Below are positions 1,735 through 62,434 of a DNA stretch of 64,000 nt, piece after piece. The first letter of the stretch is position 1. Every line of letters starts with the position of its first letter. The DNA lies in IMG/VR virus record IMGVR_UViG_3300027747_002221, positions 62,001 through 126,000 of that record; one strand, 5' to 3'. A program made the translations under genes and the position numbers. Below the pieces are notes generated by a model. That model saw only the letters and a list, made by a program, of their open reading frames with translations, made no database searches and was not told where the DNA came from.

Positions 1735-2655
1735 TTACCAGTATGCAAAATTAGTTTCTAAAAATTTATAATCCTCGCGCTTCTGCGCACTATCTATGGG
1801 CATAGGATACATCCAATGGTCATTGTACATATTATACCAACCTTTGTAACCATCAACCTTTGTCCATCTATATCCTAGTATACCAAAGAATATTTGTATA
1901 GCTCCACCCGTTTGAATACCTATTTTACCTTGTTGTTTAGCATAGTCTACATAAAAAGGAGACGATGTTGTTGCGCCAGAAAGTAAAACATCATAGTCAT
2001 ATTTAGACATTTCTTCCATAATATAACCGACAGTATCCGACCAACTATTACAACCGGGATATTGTCTATCATCCATCATAGGATGAAATGGACTTCGTAT
2101 AACACCTGCTAGTTCAAAAGGTGCAATTATATCTTTATCCTTGCCCCATATTTGTTTTATACGATTCCATTGATACTTAATTGTTTCTGCGTGCGTGGAT
2201 ATTACTAATACTTTTTTACCCTTGAGGTATTTTGTCCAAGGATCAATACAACCTGGCACATGAGATGCATGACCTAGAATTGCCCCCGGATCCATAACAA
2301 GTATAGAATGCCCAGAATAAATTGGTCTGCCTGCAAAGGTATCATATATGAATTGTTTACTAGGATCGTTGTGCATAGAATTTTCTACATCAACAAATCC
2401 CAATAAATCAGATTGTTTCATTAAGTCAATAGTTGCAGGATAAATGCTATCCAATAGATATTCTACACTTGTAGGAAATACTCCTGCTTGAACTACCGTG
2501 GAATCATTACAAAATTCAGAAGAAGGTTGTTTATTACTTAAGATACATTCTATAATATACTTGGCTGTATTGTCAATACGAAGAATAGATGCAGGATCAC
2601 CTTTAATTAAGGTATCCCTAATTATATCATTCGTTTGTTGATAGCTGATCTTCAT
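1735..2655 (-). CDS. Hypothetical protein, possibly GT-D-fold glycosyltransferase-like
   Basis: 306-aa ORF inside sugar cluster; KGKKVLVIS, DVLLSGA, GKIGIQTGGAIQIFFGILG.RW resemble a family seen in glycan loci. Confidence 0.5.
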   Translation of the reverse strand: MKISYQQTNDIIRDTLIKGDPASILRIDNTAKYIIECILSNKQPSSEFCNDSTVVQAGVFPTSVEYLLDSIYPATIDLMKQSDLLGFVDVENSMHNDPSKQFIYDTFAGRPIYSGHSILVMDPGAILGHASHVPGCIDPWTKYLKGKKVLVISTHAETIKYQWNRIKQIWGKDKDIIAPFELAGVIRSPFHPMMDDRQYPGCNSWSDTVGYIMEEMSKYDYDVLLSGATTSSPFYVDYAKQQGKIGIQTGGAIQIFFGILGYRWTKVDGYKGWYNMYNDHWMYPMPIDSAQKREDYKFLETNFAYW

Positions 2656-9023: not shown

Positions 9024-9052
9024 ATTATAACACCTTTTCCAATAGGTGTCAA
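9024..9052 (-). promoter_or_regulatory. Sigma70-type early promoter TTGACA-17-TATAAT (extended -10)
   Basis: Minus strand TTGACA cctattggaaaaggtgt TATAAT. Confidence 0.85.
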
Positions 9053-11250
9053 GCAATTTTTTCCACAAATCTACTCAAAAGAACTCTGTTGATACCCTTA
9101 CTCTTTTGCATCATCATAAATGCGTGCTTAAGTTGAGTCTTTGAGGCATTCTCATCCACTTGCATTTCTTCATCTTTTGCATCCAAATCTTTTCCACCCG
9201 GGATGATGTAGTAATCGTCATATCCCGCACCATTTATCATAAAGAATTTTTGCCTTTTAGCCGTCTTTAATTTTTCATCAAAGTCTGGCATGTTAGTACC
9301 TGATTTATCGAGTCTCGACATGATTTGTCTTTTATAATTACCAGAACTAATATAAAATCCAATTACATTAACTCCAGTATTAGCTTTCAACAATTCTAGC
9401 AATGCGATAGTTAAATCTGTTTTTGGTCTTGCTCTACCTTCATTCATTGTCTTGGTATCTCTAATAATGATGTTGCTATCACCATATCTACTATTAGGCA
9501 AATAAGCCTTCTGACCTGGCTCGTGCAACACCCTTAGAGTTTCATTCGAATCGCCATCTGTTAGGAATACTGTATTCACGACATCTAAACGATACTTCTT
9601 TCTAAACTCCTTGACAATTTCCATACTTGCAACTACTGCTTCATTTAAGGGGGTACCACCTAAATCTTCAAAATCGGAATTTCTAAAGTCATGAGAAATA
9701 ATATTTGCCGTTTGATATGAATTAATTCTCCAATTCCGACGGTCATACATCTCACCTACGAGTAACCAATATTTAGATGCTTCTTTGAATTCCACACTAG
9801 ACATTTCGCTAGATAAATATTCACGTAATCTAAAAAAGGAACAGTCGTTAAAGTCAAGCTCACCTATATTATTTGAGAACTTAAAGTATTTTTCTCGAGT
9901 AACTCTTCGTTCTTGCTCGTATGTGGCCAAGTCATATCCTAGCTCTTGTGCAATACGTTCAGGTGTATTAGAAGAATCTGTAAATGCATATACGCGGAAT
10001 GGAATATTTACTTTTTTACAGAATGTTGCAAGAATTAAAGTTTGTTCAATTGTTGCACGAATGTTATCATACATAGATCCAGAATAATCCACAAACATAA
10101 CTAAACCATGGGACTTGCCTTTTGGCACAACTGCTATGCGTTTAAATAAGTCGTCATTAGTTTTATACTGATGTATTTTCTTCAAATCCAATTCGCCAGT
10201 TTTTGAAACGGATGCGCGAGCAAACTGTCTAGCATTTCGACGCATTTCAAATTCTTTGATTAGATAAGAAATATATTTCTTATTTGTTTCATTAAAACGA
10301 GCAAATGCTTTATTCTTGCCCTCTTCTATTAATTGTAATGCTTGTTTCTCACCCATATTTATAGGATAAGAAAAATTATTGTAATGCGGTTTGATGTTCT
10401 TGTACGGAACAATAATATGCCTTAAATTTACTGTTGGGCAATTTGCATAATGATATGGTTTAAGACTATCATCTACCAAAGATTGTTCCCGTTGTCTAAA
10501 GTGGCGATCTGTCATTGATTCAGGATCTTCGTCATCGGCCGACGATTTAGAACCGCCCCAACCCCGCTGGCGTTTTTGCCTGTTCCCAATATCATCGTCT
10601 TCCATTTCATCATAATCATACTCAATATCATCATCTTCGGAATCTTCACCATCCAGATCGGCCCATAGGTTTTCAAGTTGTTCTCGTAATTCTTTTTTGC
10701 CGTTAGCATAAAGTTTATGAGCAATAGTTTCAACATCTTCCCATGTCTTCATATTATCGAGCAAATCAATATAGTATTGTTCCTCTTTCGAGAATTGGAT
10801 GTTAAGATATGAACCAACCTTATAGTGAAGATTAATCCTATCAATTAAGGGAAGTCCAGCGATATCCAAATCTTCGGCATACACACCAAAGAAATCTTTA
10901 TCCATTAAATCAGAGTAACCCTTTTTAAAGCTAGTCTTTAGACCAGGGAATTTTTCTTGGATTTTCTTTTCAATACGAACATCTTCAATGACATTCAAAT
11001 ATGTCTTGAAGCCCGGTTTAGTTTTGTCTTTTAGATTGTTGTGCCAGCCGTCATTCGGTGTATATAATGCGTGGCCTGTTTCGTGACCCAGTAGGAGGTC
11101 ATATAGTTCAGAAGACATTTCTTTCCACATGGGAAGAACCATGACTCTGTTCTTAGTATCAAAGTAAGCAGTTACAGTTTTGCGATGCTCGACTGTAATG
11201 TTCTCAGTTGCAAGTAATTTTGCGAGTATAGATTTCGACTGTGCTAGCAT
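9049..11250 (-). CDS. Metallopeptidase-like N-domain + acidic linker + vWA domain protein (CobT-like partner of the AAA ATPase)
   Basis: HETGH (HExxH), NVIEDVRIE, D/E-rich linker, MIDAS DYSGS, GGTPL, LTDG. Confidence 0.85.
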   Translation of the reverse strand: MLAQSKSILAKLLATENITVEHRKTVTAYFDTKNRVMVLPMWKEMSSELYDLLLGHETGHALYTPNDGWHNNLKDKTKPGFKTYLNVIEDVRIEKKIQEKFPGLKTSFKKGYSDLMDKDFFGVYAEDLDIAGLPLIDRINLHYKVGSYLNIQFSKEEQYYIDLLDNMKTWEDVETIAHKLYANGKKELREQLENLWADLDGEDSEDDDIEYDYDEMEDDDIGNRQKRQRGWGGSKSSADDEDPESMTDRHFRQREQSLVDDSLKPYHYANCPTVNLRHIIVPYKNIKPHYNNFSYPINMGEKQALQLIEEGKNKAFARFNETNKKYISYLIKEFEMRRNARQFARASVSKTGELDLKKIHQYKTNDDLFKRIAVVPKGKSHGLVMFVDYSGSMYDNIRATIEQTLILATFCKKVNIPFRVYAFTDSSNTPERIAQELGYDLATYEQERRVTREKYFKFSNNIGELDFNDCSFFRLREYLSSEMSSVEFKEASKYWLLVGEMYDRRNWRINSYQTANIISHDFRNSDFEDLGGTPLNEAVVASMEIVKEFRKKYRLDVVNTVFLTDGDSNETLRVLHEPGQKAYLPNSRYGDSNIIIRDTKTMNEGRARPKTDLTIALLELLKANTGVNVIGFYISSGNYKRQIMSRLDKSGTNMPDFDEKLKTAKRQKFFMINGAGYDDYYIIPGGKDLDAKDEEMQVDENASKTQLKHAFMMMQKSKGINRVLLSRFVEKIA

Positions 11251-11594: not shown

Positions 11595-12188
11595 TTATTT
11601 CCACTTGGGCCCGTGAATCCAACCTACCAAAGCTTTTCTTGTTCCTTTAGTTACAGGCTTAACTTCGTGTAATGTATATGATGGAAAAAACGTAATTGCT
11701 CCCTTTTCTTTAGCAATTGGAAAGGGTTCTTGAGATGTGATTAGATATGTTTGACCACCTTCGTATTCGGCAGGATCAGTCAATTGCATGGTAAAACTTA
11801 ATTTTCTAGGATATTGTCCTGCACCCTGAAAGTGATGGTCAACGTGAGCATCATAGAAGTCACCCTCATTATATACTGAGAACTGTAAATTTTCTATATG
11901 GTTAAGATCAAATCCAAACCATTGACTGTTTGCTGATAATACTACGTCTGTTAATTTTCTAAACAACCAAGCATTTTCTGCAGTAGTAGGAATCCACGAA
12001 ATCTTTGTCTTTCGTATTTCAGGATTTGCACCGCCAGCTTTGTCAAATGTACCACCTACTTGGGCATCCCCAATTTCTAAAGAGTCACCTAACTCTATAA
12101 TACTTTTGATCATATCATCATCAAAGATATTTTGATAGTAACAATATGCGTTGATTTGATGTGTATGTAGTTGCCATTCATTTGCCAT
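11595..12188 (-). CDS. 2OG-Fe(II) oxygenase (prolyl-hydroxylase-like)
   Basis: Y..HVD, RKLS, Y.GG, FPS..LHEV.PV..G.R..LV.W; start trimmed to MANE. Confidence 0.9.
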   Translation of the reverse strand: MANEWQLHTHQINAYCYYQNIFDDDMIKSIIELGDSLEIGDAQVGGTFDKAGGANPEIRKTKISWIPTTAENAWLFRKLTDVVLSANSQWFGFDLNHIENLQFSVYNEGDFYDAHVDHHFQGAGQYPRKLSFTMQLTDPAEYEGGQTYLITSQEPFPIAKEKGAITFFPSYTLHEVKPVTKGTRKALVGWIHGPKWK

Positions 12189-12189
12189 T

Positions 12190-13908
12190 TTATAATCCTT
12201 GTATTCTAGAAAAGTTTTGGTACTTCTCAAATTTTATAACACTTCTAAATTTATCAAAAAGAAGATCTCCTTTGTGACTAATGACAAAAACATTAGTCTC
12301 CTCTCCTAAAGTATTTATTAGGTTCATTACGTAGTCTGTGCCGTTAGCATCTAAAGAAGAGTCAAAAACCTCATCAAGTAATAGAAGGTTTGTGCTAGCA
12401 CAATTCTTCATTTTGGCGATTGTTCTCCATGTAAATAATAATGCTAAATCAATACGTTGTTTTTCACCTTCACTAAATGAAGCGTATGAGAATTCATCTC
12501 TATGTCTTGATTTAATAGATTCACTAAAAGTTTCATCTAATTCAAAATGACAAAAGAAATCCATTGCCTGTAAATATTTGTTTACAAGTTTATTAATTAC
12601 GGGCAAATACTGACGGATGATCTTAGTCTTAATACCGGTGTCCTTGAGAAGTATGGATGCGATATCGAGGTAATGTTTATCTTCATTAAGCTTCGTTTTA
12701 TCATCTGCATGCGAGACAACTTCCTTTGCCAAAATTTTGAGCTTCCTCTTTTCATCTTCCAGGTTTGTCGTATCTCCAGTGTCTCCTGCCAATTCGTCTT
12801 GTAATTTTTGAATATAGCTTTGTGAGGCAATAATTCTGGAATTGAGTTGTATGATATTGCCCTGATGTTCAGAGATTTTTGTTTCGATCTCAGCAATCTC
12901 ATTAAGTCTAGTTTCAGTATCGTTAAGTTGCTCGGTAAGGGTTTGTATTGCTGTTTGTACTTCTTCGAGTTTATGTGTGTGAAGTGCGATTGCGCTGTGT
13001 TTGAGATCAGGTACCAAATCTTGGCTACATGTCGGGCAAAGGTCATGTTCGTGGTAAAATTGTATGCTACTTTCCTGTACCTTAATTCGTTCGGTAAGTT
13101 TTCTAAGCAAAGTTCCCATTTCCGTATATCTGTCACGTTTCTCAGAAGAGTCTTGTATCGAGGATTCGAGATTTCCCTTCGCTCCCCTTTCTGCATCGAC
13201 CAAGGATGTAAGCTGTGATACTTCCTGATTCGATTCAAGTATTCGCTTTTGTACATCATCTACTTTCCTTTGTTTATCATTTTCTAATGTGCCAATATAT
13301 TGCTGTTGCAATTTAACTTTGTTTTTACCAAGTTCAATCTTAGTATCTATGTCTGTTATTTTAGTTTTAATTTCAATGTTCTTATCTTTAAGAACAGAAT
13401 TCATCACAGTAAAAATTTGAATATCTAAAATATCTTCAATAATTTCTCTTCTATGTCCCAACGGCAATTGCATAAAAGGAGTAAATGATGCACTACCTAA
13501 AATAACAATTTGAGTAAAAGATTTATAATTTAATTTTAGAATAGCGTCTTCAAGATATTTTTGATAGTCCTTAGATGCAGCGTCCTGATTCAATAAGGTT
13601 CCGTTAACATATATCTCAAATATTCCAGGTTTAATACCTCGAACAATTCTATAATCCTTTGAGCCAATAGAAAATTCTAATTCTACCTGTAAATTTTTAC
13701 CATTAATACTGTTCATCAACTGGGGTTTATTGATACTTCTAAATGGTTTATTAAATAAGCAGAAACAAATAGCGTCAAGAATAGTACTTTTGCCGGCACC
13801 ATTTTCGCCCACTACAAGTGTCGTAGTTGCTTTATCTAATTTTACTTCTGTGAATTGTGCGCCCGTGGATAAGAAATTTTTCCATTTAACTTTACTAAAT
13901 CTTATCAT
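12190..13908 (-). CDS. 46: Recombination endonuclease subunit gp46 (Rad50/SbcC-like)
   Basis: KNFLSTG, GENGAGKS, zinc hook CPTC, FSEGEKQR, LLLDEVFD, ISH. Confidence 0.97.
   Translation of the reverse strand: MIRFSKVKWKNFLSTGAQFTEVKLDKATTTLVVGENGAGKSTILDAICFCLFNKPFRSINKPQLMNSINGKNLQVELEFSIGSKDYRIVRGIKPGIFEIYVNGTLLNQDAASKDYQKYLEDAILKLNYKSFTQIVILGSASFTPFMQLPLGHRREIIEDILDIQIFTVMNSVLKDKNIEIKTKITDIDTKIELGKNKVKLQQQYIGTLENDKQRKVDDVQKRILESNQEVSQLTSLVDAERGAKGNLESSIQDSSEKRDRYTEMGTLLRKLTERIKVQESSIQFYHEHDLCPTCSQDLVPDLKHSAIALHTHKLEEVQTAIQTLTEQLNDTETRLNEIAEIETKISEHQGNIIQLNSRIIASQSYIQKLQDELAGDTGDTTNLEDEKRKLKILAKEVVSHADDKTKLNEDKHYLDIASILLKDTGIKTKIIRQYLPVINKLVNKYLQAMDFFCHFELDETFSESIKSRHRDEFSYASFSEGEKQRIDLALLFTWRTIAKMKNCASTNLLLLDEVFDSSLDANGTDYVMNLINTLGEETNVFVISHKGDLLFDKFRSVIKFEKYQNFSRIQGL
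12597..13259 (-). CDS. Candidate overprinted gene (+1 frame) inside gp46, basic 220-aa protein
   Basis: Stop-free for 220 codons; AAGGA RBS before ATGATG; gp46 synonymous codons in this interval avoid creating +1-frame stops. Confidence 0.45.
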   Translation of the reverse strand: MMYKSEYLNRIRKYHSLHPWSMQKGERREISNPRYKTLLRNVTDIRKWELCLENLPNELRYRKVAYNFTTNMTFARHVAKIWYLISNTAQSHFTHINSKKYKQQYKPLPSNLTILKLDLMRLLRSKQKSLNIRAISYNSIPELLPHKAIFKNYKTNWQETLEIRQTWKMKRGSSKFWQRKLSRMQMIKRSLMKINITSISHPYFSRTPVLRLRSSVSICP

Positions 13909-14969
13909 ACTTCCTCATAGTGTTGTGCCTCAACATAAAGTGTTTTTAAAATTCCCTTTAGTCTTTCTTTATCTGCATCTGTTTCAATACTATCCACATA
14001 ATTGGACAATAATGTCATAGTATCTTCTAAATCAATATTTTCATCTATTGCTTCAGATTCAAACTCAGAAAAATCCTCAATAATTTTTAATTCAATTGGA
14101 TTTTCCTTATAGATTGCTTCTACAAATTTATCAAACTTATAGAAGTCTTTTTTATTAACAACAATAATTTTGATTAGCTTAGAATTAAATTTTGTGATGT
14201 CGATAGACAACGGATCTTCTTTTTCGTCATCATAGTAATATTTCTCAAAAATAGTATTTGTATTTTTAATAAATTCTAGGTCCAATGTCTTAGTATCAAA
14301 GATATGAAATCCACGGTCATCCTCAAAGTCATTCCAGAATAATTGATATGGATTGCCTAGATACTGCACATTACCTCGACCATGCTTATGGTGAAAATGT
14401 CCTGAACATACTAGTTTAAAATCTTTAAACAGCGCAGGATCAAATCCGTCGTGTCCTAGATGCGCATCCTGCCCTTTATACATTATAAAACCAGCAAGCT
14501 CTAAATGACCAAAGCAAACAGTTGCTACTTTACCCTCAATCATTTTTGTGGTATGTTCATAATTATCTGTACATATCCATGGCATTAACAGTATCTTTAA
14601 ACCATCATAGTTTACTACTTGTGCTTTATCGTATGTTCTGATATTTGGATATTCTCCCAATAATAAACTAGGGGAATTTACATCATTAGTATTTTTATAG
14701 AATGTATCATGATTGCCGATAATCATGTCCATATCTATACCACGAGATTCTACTTGTTCAAAGAAATATTTTTTACAATTGCTTAATGAATTAAAATTGA
14801 TATATTTTCTACGATCAAAGCAATCGCCTAGATGTATGATCTGAGTAATTTCTCTTTTATCTAATTCGGGAAAAAATATTTCATCATAAAATTTTTTAAA
14901 ATAAGTATCAAATTGTTGCGAATCTGATCTTGCACCGAAATGAGTATCAGTTACTAACGCTATCTTCAT
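13905..14969 (-). CDS. 47: Recombination endonuclease subunit gp47 (Mre11/SbcD-like)
   Basis: DTHFG, LGDCFD.R, GNHD, GHLEL, SGHFH, YLGNPY. Confidence 0.97.
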   Translation of the reverse strand: MKIALVTDTHFGARSDSQQFDTYFKKFYDEIFFPELDKREITQIIHLGDCFDRRKYINFNSLSNCKKYFFEQVESRGIDMDMIIGNHDTFYKNTNDVNSPSLLLGEYPNIRTYDKAQVVNYDGLKILLMPWICTDNYEHTTKMIEGKVATVCFGHLELAGFIMYKGQDAHLGHDGFDPALFKDFKLVCSGHFHHKHGRGNVQYLGNPYQLFWNDFEDDRGFHIFDTKTLDLEFIKNTNTIFEKYYYDDEKEDPLSIDITKFNSKLIKIIVVNKKDFYKFDKFVEAIYKENPIELKIIEDFSEFESEAIDENIDLEDTMTLLSNYVDSIETDADKERLKGILKTLYVEAQHYEEV

Positions 14970-35890: not shown

Positions 35891-38572
35891 TTAAGCGCCA
35901 ACTTCTTCGAAAGAAATACCGCTTCTTGTTGCTATGAAATTTAACTGAATAAAATTAATAGCTCTCGATGGTTTAATGTAAATATCTGCAGTAAATTCAT
36001 TTCTGTCTATGACTGCGGGAGTATTATTAGTTTCATCGCAAACTACTTTAAATTCTGTTATGCCTCTGCGACCTTGTACATCTCTTAAGAATGGTTCTAC
36101 AATATTCTTAAATTGATTTCTTGTAAATGGATCGTTGAATTCGAATAACTGGAATTTTGCTGCAGTTGCAATAGACTTTTCAAGAACAATAAACAATCTG
36201 CGAACATTAATCCTATCGAATGCACTTGGTCTTGCTAGAAGAGTCTTATCTCCAAACAATAATGTGCCTTGACCAGGGAATGTTACTACAGGATTAACAC
36301 CGCTCTTGTATAGTGTGTCTCTATCTGTTTTAGTAGGAGAATAGGCTAATTTAACTAAATTCTTAATTACGCCTCTGTTATAACCTGCAGGCGAGAACCA
36401 AGGATCGGATACTAGATCTGTTCTTACTGCAAGACCAGCAATGTCTCCATTTAGAGGAATATATCTGTACTTGTCGTTATACCGGTCATACTGATATTTC
36501 CAACCAGTATCTAGAACTGCATAAGATGAGGATGTTAATTGATTTCTATAAGTGACGATCTTGTCTGCTTGTCCTGTGGTATTAACAATATCCACATAAG
36601 GTGGGGAAGCAAATACTACAGCGTCTCTTCTTGATTCAGCAATAGCAATCGCAGCATTAACAGCAGATACTGCAGTTGTTGGTCCCATTGGAATTAGACC
36701 AATATCATACAATTCGTCATTTGAGAATAATGCATATCCTGTTGAAACATTTCCTGTCGAAACGCTATCCCCTGAAACGCCGCCGGTTAATGTGGTTGTT
36801 ACATTTGCCGCTAAACTTTCAAATGCTGTTGATTTTGCTTCAGCTCCCCAGCTTGTAACTTCCAGTGGATGATCTAAAGACCAAATATATTTAGATTGAT
36901 TATTAATTACATTCTTATAATAGTTGGTTGAGCCATCACTATTCTTAGCATCAGATGCTTTAGATACATATGCATATTTTTCTAATATTGTACCTGCAGT
37001 TCCTGACCAAGATCCATCCACATCTATAACTAAAATATGCACTTCATCATTGGAGCCAGATTTTTCGCTAACATATGCAGATGTACCAGGAGTACCGTTA
37101 AATTGTGATTTATATAACCATGTACTATAAGTTGCAGAATCCGCCATGGAAACTTTAATAGTGTTTCCTAGCGCACCAGGATATCTTGCAGCAAATTCTC
37201 CAAATGTTAACCCACCTGAAGAATAATTTAAAATAAAATTATCACCATTTGTTATAACAAGAGGAGATAAAGATATATTTGTTGTAGTTTGGAATTGTAT
37301 TACATTACTAAGTCTGATAGAAACAGTATTTGCATTGGAAGTATATCCTAACCCGGGATTTGTTATAGTAACAGATTGTAACGGATATTTAACTATTGCG
37401 TTTGCTGCGACATTTGAAGTAATATAATTTAAATCATCTGCCGCGGGATTAATTTGTACGGAAGGTGTACCTACATAACCATATCCATTTGCAGTTAGAG
37501 TTAATGTACTAACAAATGCACTAATACGAGCTTGAACCGCAGCATTTGTGCCGCCCAATAGATTATTTCTATTAATTATTACGGAAGGTATTGTGGCATA
37601 TCCAGCAACACCGGGATTGTCTATAGTAATACTATCTACGTAGCCATATGCAACGTTTGCAACCACGGTTGCATTAGTCCCAACGTTTGCGCTGTTTCTA
37701 TTAATTGTTACGTTCGGTGCACCTATATAACCATTGCCCTGAGTTACTATTGTTACACCGGTAATGTTGCCATTGGTAATAACCAAATTTGCTGTGGCAT
37801 GTACGCCGGTAGCGACAATATTACCAGAGAATACAATATTTGCATTAGCATCATAATTAGATCCAATAACAGAAATATTGGCGTCTCTCATTTTAAATCT
37901 TACTACTAGATTTGCTCGTGCAGATGTTGAAAATTGATTTTCTATTATAATATTTGATGAAGTAGTATAATTATTACCTCCATTTAATACAAATATATTA
38001 GATAGTTGCCCGCTTGATAGTGTCGCAGTTGCGGTTGCAGTACTTGTAGGAGAACCTCCTATTATGGTAACAGTAGGTGCAGTATTATATCCAAAACCAG
38101 TACTGGATACTGTCAAACTTGTTACCTTACCATTACTAGTATTTAAAACTGGAGTGCCTGCCGCTTCAATAACAACAAATTGGCCCGAATCAATGTCGAC
38201 AGTTAAATTTGCGGTAGAGGTAAAATATATTTGGTCGGTTGTATTATTTGCAGGAATGTTAACACCGGTTACTATACCGGTGGGTCTAGTAACCGCGTTT
38301 CTCGCAACACCCTTATCCACTACACGAACTACTTTTAAATTATTACCATACGATAAGAAATTTGCAGCAGTAAAGAAGTATCCTGCAGTAGTATCGTTTG
38401 GTTTACCAAACGCATTAACTAAATTGGTTTCTGAATCTACAGTTGTTACTTCTTCTACAGGACCCCATTGGAATGCGCCTGCGAACCCTCCAGATGTGGT
38501 TGCAACTGTTGGGACAACTGTTGTTCGGTCCTGTTCCGTTACTACAACGCCAGGTGAAAGCTGAAATGCCAT
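35891..38572 (-). CDS. 18: Tail sheath protein gp18 with a large repeat insertion
   Basis: FQLSPGV, F.WGP, FGKP, PWFSPAG..RG, GDKT, FDRINVRRLF, FEFND. Confidence 0.96.
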   Translation of the reverse strand: MAFQLSPGVVVTEQDRTTVVPTVATTSGGFAGAFQWGPVEEVTTVDSETNLVNAFGKPNDTTAGYFFTAANFLSYGNNLKVVRVVDKGVARNAVTRPTGIVTGVNIPANNTTDQIYFTSTANLTVDIDSGQFVVIEAAGTPVLNTSNGKVTSLTVSSTGFGYNTAPTVTIIGGSPTSTATATATLSSGQLSNIFVLNGGNNYTTSSNIIIENQFSTSARANLVVRFKMRDANISVIGSNYDANANIVFSGNIVATGVHATANLVITNGNITGVTIVTQGNGYIGAPNVTINRNSANVGTNATVVANVAYGYVDSITIDNPGVAGYATIPSVIINRNNLLGGTNAAVQARISAFVSTLTLTANGYGYVGTPSVQINPAADDLNYITSNVAANAIVKYPLQSVTITNPGLGYTSNANTVSIRLSNVIQFQTTTNISLSPLVITNGDNFILNYSSGGLTFGEFAARYPGALGNTIKVSMADSATYSTWLYKSQFNGTPGTSAYVSEKSGSNDEVHILVIDVDGSWSGTAGTILEKYAYVSKASDAKNSDGSTNYYKNVINNQSKYIWSLDHPLEVTSWGAEAKSTAFESLAANVTTTLTGGVSGDSVSTGNVSTGYALFSNDELYDIGLIPMGPTTAVSAVNAAIAIAESRRDAVVFASPPYVDIVNTTGQADKIVTYRNQLTSSSYAVLDTGWKYQYDRYNDKYRYIPLNGDIAGLAVRTDLVSDPWFSPAGYNRGVIKNLVKLAYSPTKTDRDTLYKSGVNPVVTFPGQGTLLFGDKTLLARPSAFDRINVRRLFIVLEKSIATAAKFQLFEFNDPFTRNQFKNIVEPFLRDVQGRRGITEFKVVCDETNNTPAVIDRNEFTADIYIKPSRAINFIQLNFIATRSGISFEEVGA

Positions 38573-59866: not shown

Positions 59867-62434
59867 TTATGCTAAATTTACCAAAGATTTCGAAACAGGT
59901 GTATGATTAGCAAATGTCTGTACTGGAGGGTTGGATGTTTTAACTATTGCCCCGTTTGCAGTTAAGAACGCAATGTGTATCCACGCCGATCTTAATTTAT
60001 TATTTCCAGACTCAAACGCATATTCCAGAATAATTTGTCTATGTGGAATATTTTGTACTATCCATTGAGCTATGTCGCTGTAATCTTTAAATCTAGTATT
60101 TGTAAATTTTATATCTGCAGCCGCACCTAATCCATGATCACTTGTCTCAGAATTACTCCCAGTAACTATAGTTGTTACTGGTCTAAACACACTATTAATT
60201 TTCATATCAGGAAATTTTGCCTTAATAGGATCTAAACAATTTACAGTTAATTGTTTTAAGTTATATACTATTTGTTTCTCTGTCAATCCTCGTTGAGCAA
60301 CCAACCCGCCATCTTTTAACATATCATCCAACGTAAATATTCTGTTATCTTTATTGGATAATATAAATGATCTTGGGAAGAATGTAAATTTATTAATATC
60401 CGCATCATTTACTTTTATTACAGGAGTAGCTGCAGAAAGTATTGCCTCACCCTCAACTACTTTAGGAACAATACTAGTGTTAATTAAACCTAGTTGTTCT
60501 AAGCTTAATTTATAGGCATCTGTTCCCGCATCCCCGGCGTCATGGTAGAATGTTGCTTTGGATACTACCTCTCTTTGTAATAAAGGAATAGGTGTTTTAT
60601 CTGGTGATTTTTTCTCAGGTAATTTATCTATTGGACGATCTATTTGCTGAATACTCACGGCACCTGATTGTTGTTTTACGGTAGCGCCTTCTATTAAAGT
60701 TTCTAATCCCCCGTTTATACTCATAGTAGATGCTCTACCAGATTCCATTAAGAAATCTCCGGAAGCTTTTTGAACAATATCTCCATCTTTGGAGTAAAAA
60801 TTTATTCCTTTACCCTGCATACTAATGGGACCCTCGGATACTAGACTAAAACTCTTAGCTGCGGTAACCCTTAAATTTTCGGATATGATACTTGTTTGGC
60901 CGGCACTTTGTACCAACGTATTTCCATGACTTGTTACTGCCAGGTCACCCTCTACTTGAATTTTTGCGTCATCCTTAACTAATATACTAGTTTTGCCTTC
61001 GACCGTTATACATTGAGCCCCTTTAACATATACTAGATTATTACGATCTATAACCTCATAATTATCACCTACGGTTTTTCTCACCATTGATCCATTTACG
61101 TCAATCTCAATATATGTGCCTGTCTTATGAAATATATGTATTCTTTCTGCGCCCGGTGTGCTATCTAATTCTATTAAATGCCCGGCCTCAGTTTCTGTAA
61201 CTTGATTATACGGGTATCCCGCACCATACGCAGAGTCGGGTTCGTTCCATGTTTGTTTACTATTGGCTAATTGAATATTGTCTATTTTCTTATTCTTTTT
61301 TACGTTAAAACTTTTATGTGTTACATCACCGACTGCTAATTTATTAATATCACTAACCCCCGTATAATCTAAGCTTGGATATTTTTTATTTGGATCTTGA
61401 AATCCTTTTATATTATTTAAAGCAGAATTATTTAAAGCAGCATTGTTTGTATTTGTATTATTTGTACTTGGTAAAAAATTACCTGCGGCGTCTAGTTTAT
61501 ATTCAAAATCTCTTGCATTTCCGCCTAGAGCAGTATTAACGGCAACAAAATAATCCTTAGCTAATTTTCCATTAATATCTTTTTTATTTAATTTGTCTGC
61601 ATTAGTTACACCCATTGCTAATGATGTGGCTAATAATCCAGCAACATCTTTTGGATCATCTTTATCTGAAATTTTTCCCATTTGTAACAGAGTATTATAA
61701 TTAATTTTGGATGCCGCAACAACTGCAGATTCCTGTATTGCAGTATCTTCTAAAAATTTTGTTTTACTTGTTATGCCATCCTTACCTGTCCAATTATTAG
61801 AATCAGCAGTCCATGTAGCTGAAACTATATCTTCCGGACATCTTTTAACATATCCCAAATCAATTAAAGCATTGACACTTAACTGATACTTACCTAAATC
61901 TCCTGCAGAACTTTCCTTAGCATAATTTCCACCTGATACTTTTTCAGAAAATGTTTTAAGAAATGTATTTAAATCTGTTTGTGTCAACGGACCTAAATTA
62001 GGTTGAGAATTTTTGTCAGTTTTTACCACATAGGTATTATCCTGATTAACTAAAGCTTCCCCGCCGGAACTTTTAACAACATTATTTATGGATTTATCCT
62101 GTGCTTGTCTAACCAATGATGCTACAGACGGAGAGGGTTTGCCCGCAAGTGTTCCTATAATTAACGGGCGTTGCATCTCCGATCCATCCATAAACCAACC
62201 CACAACCCAAGTTCCTGGTACTATACCTACAGGTGCAGAACCTACTCCTGACGTTGCTGCAGATGTTATAGACTGCATAGGTAGGGCCCATGGTAAATCT
62301 GAGGTAGGCAATGCTGTAGTATCCGCAGTATGATGACCGAATACTCTTACCCGGCATCTTCCTAGTTTTTCTGGATCGTCTCTATCCTCAACAACTCCAG
62401 TCCACCAGACAAGCTCATTATTACCAAATATCAT
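59867..62434 (-). CDS. 5: Baseplate hub/needle gp5 with lysozyme-like insert and C-terminal peptidase M15
   Basis: WW.GVVEDR.DP..LGR.RVR..G.H, LPWA; YPYN.V.ETE.GH..E.D.TP..ERI; SDH..G.AADI...WIH. Confidence 0.9.
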   Translation of the reverse strand: MIFGNNELVWWTGVVEDRDDPEKLGRCRVRVFGHHTADTTALPTSDLPWALPMQSITSAATSGVGSAPVGIVPGTWVVGWFMDGSEMQRPLIIGTLAGKPSPSVASLVRQAQDKSINNVVKSSGGEALVNQDNTYVVKTDKNSQPNLGPLTQTDLNTFLKTFSEKVSGGNYAKESSAGDLGKYQLSVNALIDLGYVKRCPEDIVSATWTADSNNWTGKDGITSKTKFLEDTAIQESAVVAASKINYNTLLQMGKISDKDDPKDVAGLLATSLAMGVTNADKLNKKDINGKLAKDYFVAVNTALGGNARDFEYKLDAAGNFLPSTNNTNTNNAALNNSALNNIKGFQDPNKKYPSLDYTGVSDINKLAVGDVTHKSFNVKKNKKIDNIQLANSKQTWNEPDSAYGAGYPYNQVTETEAGHLIELDSTPGAERIHIFHKTGTYIEIDVNGSMVRKTVGDNYEVIDRNNLVYVKGAQCITVEGKTSILVKDDAKIQVEGDLAVTSHGNTLVQSAGQTSIISENLRVTAAKSFSLVSEGPISMQGKGINFYSKDGDIVQKASGDFLMESGRASTMSINGGLETLIEGATVKQQSGAVSIQQIDRPIDKLPEKKSPDKTPIPLLQREVVSKATFYHDAGDAGTDAYKLSLEQLGLINTSIVPKVVEGEAILSAATPVIKVNDADINKFTFFPRSFILSNKDNRIFTLDDMLKDGGLVAQRGLTEKQIVYNLKQLTVNCLDPIKAKFPDMKINSVFRPVTTIVTGSNSETSDHGLGAAADIKFTNTRFKDYSDIAQWIVQNIPHRQIILEYAFESGNNKLRSAWIHIAFLTANGAIVKTSNPPVQTFANHTPVSKSLVNLA

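Follow-up and report, generated by a model that had tools for sequence, protein, structure and literature searches.

Genes nested out of frame inside other genes are textbook in tiny viruses, and most documented cases of de novo overprinting, as reviewed in PMC8227390 and PMC3494269, are found in small RNA or ssDNA viruses under strong genome-size pressure. In such cases a clade-restricted novel frame lies inside an older, widely distributed gene, and its product is an orphan of biased composition with a low-confidence or partly disordered fold, weaker constraint than the ancestral frame, codon usage further from that of the genome and an accessory role. In large dsDNA phages long nested genes are hardly documented, and standard gene callers discard them. 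A comparable arrangement is Rz1 of phage lambda, which appears to lie wholly inside Rz on the same strand and in the +1 frame and to be translated from its own internal start on the shared mRNA; Rz1 is about 60 codons long and probably encodes a lipoprotein with a signal sequence and lipobox that acts with its host gene product in lysis. Candidate long overlapping genes have also been detected by ORF-length permutation tests (PMC6188560).

Here we describe an ORF of 220 codons in the +1 frame of the Rad50-like repair gene gp46 of an uncultured freshwater T4-like phage with a genome of 222 kb, where compaction is not an obvious driver. The analysed window is a stretch of 64,000 nucleotides (positions 62,001 to 126,000 of IMG/VR record IMGVR_UViG_3300027747_002221), and the features of the locus are collected in Table 1. 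As with the candidates of PMC6188560, the ORF is longer than expected after codon permutation, but here the single-genome signal is backed by comparative evidence from more than 80 distinct related sequences. The ORF shares with the overprinted genes of viruses the features listed above, the accessory role being inferred, although its overlap is long (663 nt). It differs from Rz1 in its length (135–249 codons among relatives) and in its host gene, and its N-terminus, MMYKSEYLNRIRKYH, is hydrophilic (GRAVY of the protein about −0.7), with no signal peptide or lipobox.

Table 1. Features of the gp46 locus (positions in the 64,000-nucleotide window)
Feature	Position	Strand	Remarks
gp47, Mre11-like nuclease gene	13905..14969	-	Upstream of gp46; its stop overlaps the gp46 start; Pfam Metallophos_2; probably on the same mRNA
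gp46, Rad50/SbcC-like recombination ATPase gene	12190..13908	-	572 aa; host (ancestral) gene
AAGGA, Shine-Dalgarno-like motif	13266..13270	-	6 nt upstream of the first ATG
In-frame TAG	13260..13262	-	Closes the +1 frame immediately before the start (codon 216)
Tandem ATG ATG of the nested ORF	13254..13259	-	gp46 codons 217/218
Nested +1-frame ORF	12597..13259	-	220 codons plus a TAA stop at 12597-12599; gp46 codons 217-437
Conserved core of the nested protein	12850..13257	-	About residues 2-137; gp46 codons 218-353
gp46 zinc hook CPTC	13027..13038	-	gp46 codons 291-294; dual-coded with the nested-frame stretch FTTNMTFAR
Variable C-terminal tail of the nested protein	12597..12849	-	Length differs between lineages
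2OG-Fe(II) oxygenase gene	11595..12230	-	Downstream; overlaps the last 41 nt of gp46

The identity of the host gene is well supported: Pfam SMC_N and AAA_23 span residues 6–551, PDB Rad50 and SbcC chains match, relatives in named phages are annotated as gp46, and the zinc hook CPTC is invariant.

The initial annotation described a stop-free +1 frame across the gp46 coiled coil and zinc hook, kept open by codon context, and inferred a novel nested gene; every element of that description was confirmed. The ORF has no stop, against 32 stops in the other 352 codons of the same frame. All 12 internal xTA codons are followed by a C- or T-initial codon, although 65% of codons in the region start with A or G, and none of the 8 xTG codons is followed by A, which gives a probability of 0.348^12 × 0.652^8, or about 1e-7. 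Just outside, the +1 stops formed by ata-aca (codon 184) and ata-gat (codon 187) are present, the nearest upstream stops being tta-gaa (208) and gta-gat (216). Codon use shifts within the interval (Leu TTA 1/26 against 19/37 outside, CTC 7 against 0, ATC 7/20 against 2/32), and GC is 0.40 against about 0.30.

Chance is excluded as the source of the open frame. Synonymous permutation over the whole gene expects 14.0 stops (minimum 3 in 20,000), permutation within the region expects 9.3 (minimum 3), and codon-order shuffling expects 11.3 (minimum 4); the longest permuted run was 185 codons. The ORF is the longest alternative-frame run in any of the 57 genes of the window, where +1 frames have a median of 42 and a 95th percentile of 85 codons.

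The frame stays open at the same place in close and moderately distant gp46 homologues, at region nucleotide identity down to about 65% and gp46 region amino-acid identity of 53–72%. In 32 unique gp46 sequences there is no +1 stop over codons 218–391; on a coil-region tree of 5.1 substitutions per site, with 549 synonymous and 744 nonsynonymous parsimony changes, between 52 and 87 stop gains were expected and none was observed. A lineage-by-lineage permutation restricted to changed codons gave P from below 1e-4 (none of 20,000 permutations) to 0.1 per comparison. A further 51 distinct products from metagenome contigs all lie at the same gp46 codon. Both grounds for rejection named in the initial annotation, scattered stops in close homologues and frequent long ORFs after shuffling, were tested and failed to refute its interpretation. 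By contrast, gp46 relatives with a different coil allele have 14–20 stops in this region. Of the five alternative frames, only +1 is consistently open across relatives, and GC3 is raised in the region only in ORF-bearing phages. The 130-codon codon-aligned antisense run in the same region is not conserved (50–143 codons, 2–10 stops among relatives) and follows from the avoidance of TTA and CTA.

Synonymous variation of gp46 is suppressed within the overlap. Among identical-amino-acid codons, 0.201 differ in the region against 0.315 in the flanks (Fisher P = 9e-15; 9 of 10 pairs), whereas ORF-less relatives give 0.388 against 0.411 (P = 0.24). For close pairs the region-to-flank pS ratio is 0.24–0.69, against 1.05–1.25 in controls. 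The dip maps to codons 209–390, and the only other dip, at codons 547–572, falls at the known 3′ overlap with the oxygenase gene, which serves as an internal positive control.

The nested frame itself shows purifying selection by the dNN/dNS measure of Wei and Zhang (PMC4316641): dNN/dNS is 0.48 against 0.77 in ORF-less controls, and dSN/dSS is 0.36 against 0.65. By a Poisson approximation, the ratio of 0.62 gives z of about 3.6, although the pairs are not fully independent. It should be noted that the nested frame is less conserved than gp46 in the same columns (mean majority frequency 0.62 against 0.72), and that in one subclade of relatives (L005, L008 and L013) its naive pN/pS is about 1 or higher. 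The nested-invariant residues N32-P33, W48 and P56 force gp46 K-S-S, M-G and L-S, which are invariant or nearly so in the clade but variable in ORF-less relatives.

An ATG is present at codon 217 or 218, or both, in every ORF-bearing relative. Where the host ORF is complete, the first in-frame ATG is at codon 218 in 30 distinct metagenome products, at 217 in 5 and at 210 in 4. A Shine-Dalgarno match of 5 nt or more, as in the window, is seen at 4.7% of internal ATGs against 35% of gene starts in the window, but many relatives have only purine-rich matches of 3–4 nt. No sigma-70-like promoter, T4 late-promoter consensus or terminator lies just upstream of or inside the ORF on the coding strand. 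Lake metatranscriptome contigs contain identical fragments of the region, covering parts of 12336–13204, but cannot tell frames apart and could be DNA carry-over.

The product is basic (pI 10.5–12) and is predicted, at low confidence, to be mostly helical. The initial annotation remarked on its K/R-richness; this is not special to the ORF, since the +1 frame of ORF-less relatives is just as basic, and is inherited from coiled-coil codons. The core holds all invariant and near-invariant residues, and short forms of 115–145 aa end just after it, with many stops downstream; total protein length is 135–249 aa. AlphaFold2 with 23 and then 28 sequences gave pLDDT 55 and 64 and pTM 0.18 and 0.27, and Foldseek against PDB gave no hit at E <= 0.001. 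Pfam and PHROG searches with four family members gave only sub-threshold noise, a profile word search of 5.8 billion proteins found nothing, and the best ESM atlas score was 0.85, to unnamed clusters, which is below the level that is meaningful. Language-model recognition falls in the range reached by few proteins of known families, although this does not show whether a gene is real. An exhaustive hmmsearch of 1.84 billion representative proteins found two nested +1-frame ORFs of gp46 genes, one clear member of this family (E = 6e-64) and one weak match (E = 2e-5) that may only reflect host-gene homology, each called because an N-run had split gp46. No match was found by tblastn against 50,697 GenBank phage records, so no cultured phage is known to carry the ORF.

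Overall, these data support, with good confidence though without direct evidence of translation, a genuine protein-coding gene created by overprinting: a +1 frame opened inside the low-constraint coiled-coil arm of the ancestral gp46 in one clade of freshwater T4-like phages and has since been kept open by purifying selection. The direction of origin follows from the distribution, gp46 being universal and the ORF clade-restricted and probably de novo, and from the RSCU correlation with the genome, which is 0.89 for the gp46 flanks, 0.37 for gp46 in the overlap and 0.05 for the nested frame. We infer translation by internal initiation at codon 217/218 from the gp47-gp46 mRNA, helped in this phage by the AAGGA motif. 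The gene is evidently dispensable, as some close relatives have replaced the coil allele or carry truncated forms, and an accessory role is inferred. Binding of nucleic acid or of the acidic Mre11-Rad50 machinery is only a low-confidence guess, resting on charge, on gain, loss and truncation among close relatives, and on the precedent that embedded phage genes often serve the same process as their host gene; the predicted complex with gp46 gave no answer and is not used as evidence either way.

Other explanations are much less likely. Programmed +1 (or −2) frameshifting out of gp46, giving a fusion of the N-terminal ATPase half with a basic alternative C-terminus, would fit the common strand and mRNA, the weak Shine-Dalgarno motif of many relatives and the lineages in which the +1 frame is open 8–29 codons further upstream. 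However, in the window and most relatives the TAG directly before the ATG means that a shift would have to occur within a codon or two of the conserved Met, a frameshift product would not need the ATG conserved in every lineage, and no conserved slippery motif was seen in the start regions inspected, albeit without a dedicated scan. A compensated double frameshift of gp46 is rejected because the gp46 frame aligns without gaps, including the zinc hook, with all relatives. It is also unlikely that the gene is a decaying relic in this lineage. Several relatives carry truncated or closed versions (L022 135 aa, L126 141 aa, L189 34 aa, L129 5 aa), but the phage studied here has the full 220 codons, the best Shine-Dalgarno motif of the family and tandem ATGs, and its closest relatives (L004 and L032; 76–79% nested identity) show the strongest synonymous suppression (0.14–0.16 against 0.30–0.38) and dNN/dNS of 0.38–0.52.

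Constraint on an mRNA or DNA structure or binding element could likewise produce synonymous suppression and a GC shift, but such an element has no reason to avoid stops in one frame only: the +2 frame carries 16–32 stops in the same stretch, and the antisense frames are not consistently open. The dependence of stop avoidance on codon context, the preference for substitutions synonymous in the nested frame and the divergence of the region by about 30–35% at the nucleotide level with the frame kept open all make this reading improbable. A compositional artefact, perhaps a GC-richer segment acquired by recombination, draws on the different composition of the region and on the different phylogenies of the coil segment and the ATPase head, which show recombination; it is already refuted by the permutation tests, which retain 9.3 expected stops under the region's own codon usage, and by the persistence of the frame over the tree. 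Moreover, ORF-less coils of the same architecture have 14–20 stops, and relatives with overall higher GC3 and no local shift also keep the frame open.

A more speculative and unlikely possibility is that the nested protein is a dedicated partner or regulator of the phage Mre11-Rad50 (gp47/gp46) machine, made from the same mRNA segment that encodes the acidic coiled-coil arm and binding that arm or the DNA ends it processes. This would be a repair-complex analogue of the Rz/Rz1 arrangement, and the coil plus nested gene would then move between phages as one recombination cassette.

Taken together, our results provide a well-supported natural case of apparent de novo gene birth inside one of the most conserved core genes of T4-like phages, with a datable origin and natural presence, absence and truncation series, and a new orphan protein that is abundant in lake phages. 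They are also a caution for studies that treat the Rad50 coiled coil as freely evolving or that use gp46 synonymous sites as neutral.

The sequence analyzed is part of a 222 kb uncultured virus record from a lake metagenome, and its nearest named relatives, at about 67% nucleotide identity in the gene considered here, are T4-like phages of Methylophilales, Pelagibacter and marine cyanobacteria. This gene is the Rad50/SbcC-like gp46, which matches Pfam SMC_N and AAA_23 and the PDB Rad50 and SbcC chains and has an invariant CPTC zinc hook. The Mre11-like gp47 lies directly upstream, and a 2OG-Fe(II) oxygenase gene overlaps the end of gp46. The nested ORF in the +1 frame of gp46 begins ATGATG, directly after an in-frame TAG, with AAGGA 6 nt upstream.

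Coordinates of the nested ORF, its host gene and other features noted (L numbers denote relatives and contigs carrying gp46)
Sequence	Position	Strand	Feature
Window	12190-13908	-	gp46, Rad50/SbcC-like
Window	12597-13259	-	Nested ORF in the +1 frame of gp46, 220 codons, spanning gp46 codons 217-437
Window	12190-12230		Overlap (41 nt) of gp46 with the start of the downstream 2OG-Fe(II) oxygenase gene
Window	9049-11250	-	ORF of 733 aa
Window	35891-38572	-	Gene of 894 codons with a 197-codon stop-free run in its antisense -1 frame
L121	about 2383-2401		Contig in which gp46 is split upstream of the nested ORF
L136	1156-1824		More distant gp46 with a 222-codon open +1 frame (ENA scaffold; protein P0002)

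The +1 frame of gp46 has 32 stops in its other 352 codons and none in these 220. We compared this with three null models of 20,000 permutations each. When synonymous codons were permuted over the whole gene, 14.0 stops were expected in the interval and the fewest seen was 3; when they were permuted within the interval, which keeps its own codon usage, 9.3 were expected and the fewest seen was again 3; when the codon order was shuffled within the interval, 11.3 were expected and the fewest seen was 4. The longest permuted run was 185 codons. The initial annotation had noted that GTA, ATA and TTA in this interval occur only before C or T, and this is exact: all 12 internal xTA codons precede a C- or T-initial codon, although 65% of codons there start with A or G, and no xTG codon precedes A. 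Codon usage is visibly bent, with Leu TTA at 1/26 inside against 19/37 outside, CTC at 7 against 0, ATC at 7/20 against 2/32, and AAG at 10/19 against 6/35, and GC is 0.40 against about 0.30.

Among all five alternative frames of the 57 genes in the window, this is the longest open run; for +1 frames the median is 42 codons and the 95th percentile 85. The second-longest is the antisense -1 run in the 894-codon gene, but that frame class is generally long (median 70, 95th percentile 123), so it is a milder outlier. A 123-codon antisense open run was also found in the 733-aa ORF, which despite its size has no Pfam match at E <= 0.001.

A search of IMG/VR with gp46 gave a graded series of relatives. 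Every relative whose coil region is of the same type keeps the +1 frame open at the same place, for 180-233 codons, even though gp46 identity in the region falls to 61-72% at the amino-acid level and 65-73% at the nucleotide level, whereas relatives with another coil type have 14-20 stops there. Only the +1 frame behaves this way; the +2 frame has 16-32 stops in the stretch, and the antisense frames vary. Searching with the nested protein alignment found further, more distant lineages with ORFs of 180-249 codons, with nested identity of 33-50% and gp46 region identity of 53-55%, and a further 51 distinct products came from JGI metagenome contigs. Wherever the host ORF is complete, the conserved MYK[SN]EYL start sits at gp46 codon 217/218, sometimes with a 7-8 residue N-terminal extension.

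It should be noted that in several contigs (L121, L131, L133, L165 and L182) gp46 is split by a single frameshift or stop upstream of the nested ORF, while the nested ORF is intact; in L121 the N-terminal 185 aa are in another frame. L131 carries the same nested product as the intact L132 (and L191), so assembly or sequencing indels are the likely cause, although a real split was not excluded.

Over gp46 codons 218-391, 32 unique sequences have no +1 stop. Their region tree is 5.1 substitutions per site long and carries at least 549 synonymous and 744 nonsynonymous codon changes. Of the possible gp46-synonymous mutations, 9.6% would create a +1 stop, as would 6.8% of all sense mutations, so that 52-87 stop gains were expected and none was seen. 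This set was chosen for being open, and the clade also contains a few truncated forms, but these are few against the expectation. A deliberately conservative test, in which only the codons that differ between two lineages were permuted, still gives P from below 1e-4 (none of 20,000 permutations) to 0.1 for each of 12 comparisons.

Synonymous change in gp46 is suppressed in the overlap. Among codon pairs with identical gp46 residues, the fraction that differs synonymously in ORF-bearing phages is 0.201 in the overlap against 0.315 in the flanks (Fisher P = 9e-15; 9 of 10 pairs), while in ORF-less relatives it is 0.388 against 0.411 (P = 0.24). The dip covers codons 209-390 and then returns to flank level. 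A second dip, to 0.16 in codons 547-572 in the relatives, coincides with the known, conventional overlap with the oxygenase gene and is a built-in positive control. By Nei-Gojobori counts, close ORF-bearing pairs have region-to-flank pS ratios of 0.24-0.69, while close ORF-less pairs have ratios of 1.05-1.25.

Constraint on the nested protein itself was estimated with the partition of Wei and Zhang for overlapping genes (PMC4316641). The nested frame has dNN/dNS = 0.48, against 0.77 for the same frame in ORF-less controls, and gp46 has dNN/dSN = 0.22, against 0.31. Both proteins are therefore under purifying selection, gp46 more strongly, which is the usual pattern for an ancestral frame and a novel one. 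In addition, some nested residues dictate gp46 residues: nested N32-P33, W48 and P56, which are invariant across 28 diverse members, force gp46 K-S-S (with the rare TCC codon), M-G and L-S, and those gp46 residues are invariant or nearly so in the clade but variable in ORF-less relatives.

gp46 is universal in these phages, while the nested frame is confined to one coil type. The RSCU correlation with the rest of the window is 0.89 for the gp46 flanks, 0.37 for gp46 inside the overlap and 0.05 for the nested frame. Both observations point to gp46 as the ancestral frame and to the nested ORF as a de novo overprint. A tree of the ATPase-head flanks places ORF-less lineages (L023/L024; L033/L034/L053) inside the ORF-bearing group, whereas a tree of the coil region makes all ORF-bearing sequences one group (support 91/96) and joins the L023 coil to that of the distant L041 (99/92; gp46 codons 217-400). 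Another relative, L008, is 91-99% identical to the window in the flanks but 62% in the coil. This points to modular recombination of the Rad50 arm; the coil segment, with or without its nested gene, is exchanged by recombination, and the gene is accessory.

Several lineages carry short forms of 115-145 residues (L022, L126, L042, L184-L188 and L190). In L022 and L126 these end just after the conserved SKRKSLNI-A-S motif and are followed by 6-7 stops, yet their remaining runs of 142-156 codons are still significant (P < 2e-4). The conserved unit is therefore the N-terminal core of about 135 residues, which holds all invariant residues. Two contigs have early stops (L129 after 5 codons and L189 after 34 codons), which are apparent losses.

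The product is basic (pI 10.5-12, K+R 19-26%) and hydrophilic. The basic character, which the initial annotation had described as K/R-richness, is inherited from reading coiled-coil codons one base out of phase, because ORF-less relatives show it too, and is not in itself a functional clue. AlphaFold2 predicts helices at low confidence (pLDDT 64 and pTM 0.27 with 28 sequences), best (70-85) for residues 40-100. Nothing matched in Pfam, PHROGs, PDB folds, the protein atlas or GenBank phages. In 1.84 billion representative proteins, the only matches were two nested +1-frame ORFs of gp46 genes, both reported by gene callers because a scaffold gap had broken gp46. One is a clear member of this family (E = 6e-64). 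The other, from the GC-richer gp46 of L136, whose open +1 frame is at the same position, resembles the family only weakly (E = 2e-5 over residues 66-196) and may be a distant member, an independent overprint, or shadow similarity from the homologous host gene.

No promoter-like or terminator-like site lies just upstream of or within the ORF on the coding strand. In the window as a whole, all 57 crude genes lie on the - strand, as do all 7 copies of the T4 late-promoter consensus TATAAATA, a motif that is under-represented overall (7 against 17.8 expected from shuffles). The simplest reading is internal initiation on the gp47-gp46 mRNA at the conserved ATG. The window's AAGGA at -6 appears to be a good site; a match of 5 nt or more occurs at 4.7% of internal ATGs against 35% of gene starts, although many relatives have weaker sites. 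Entry by frameshifting is unlikely, because a TAG directly precedes the ATG in most lineages. As to function, which is unknown, we tentatively favor an accessory role in nucleic-acid transactions or in modulating Mre11-Rad50; a predicted complex with gp46 gave no answer and is not evidence either way.

Taken together, our results confirm the open frame described in the initial annotation and support its interpretation as a novel gene nested in the Rad50-like arm of gp46. There is no direct evidence of translation, and although lake metatranscriptome assemblies contain identical fragments of the region, they say nothing about frame and may include DNA. We found no report of this gene in the literature searched; overprinting as an arrangement is already known, whereas the protein family encoded here has no known relatives. 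We read the nested ORF as a real, conserved, clade-restricted overprinted gene.
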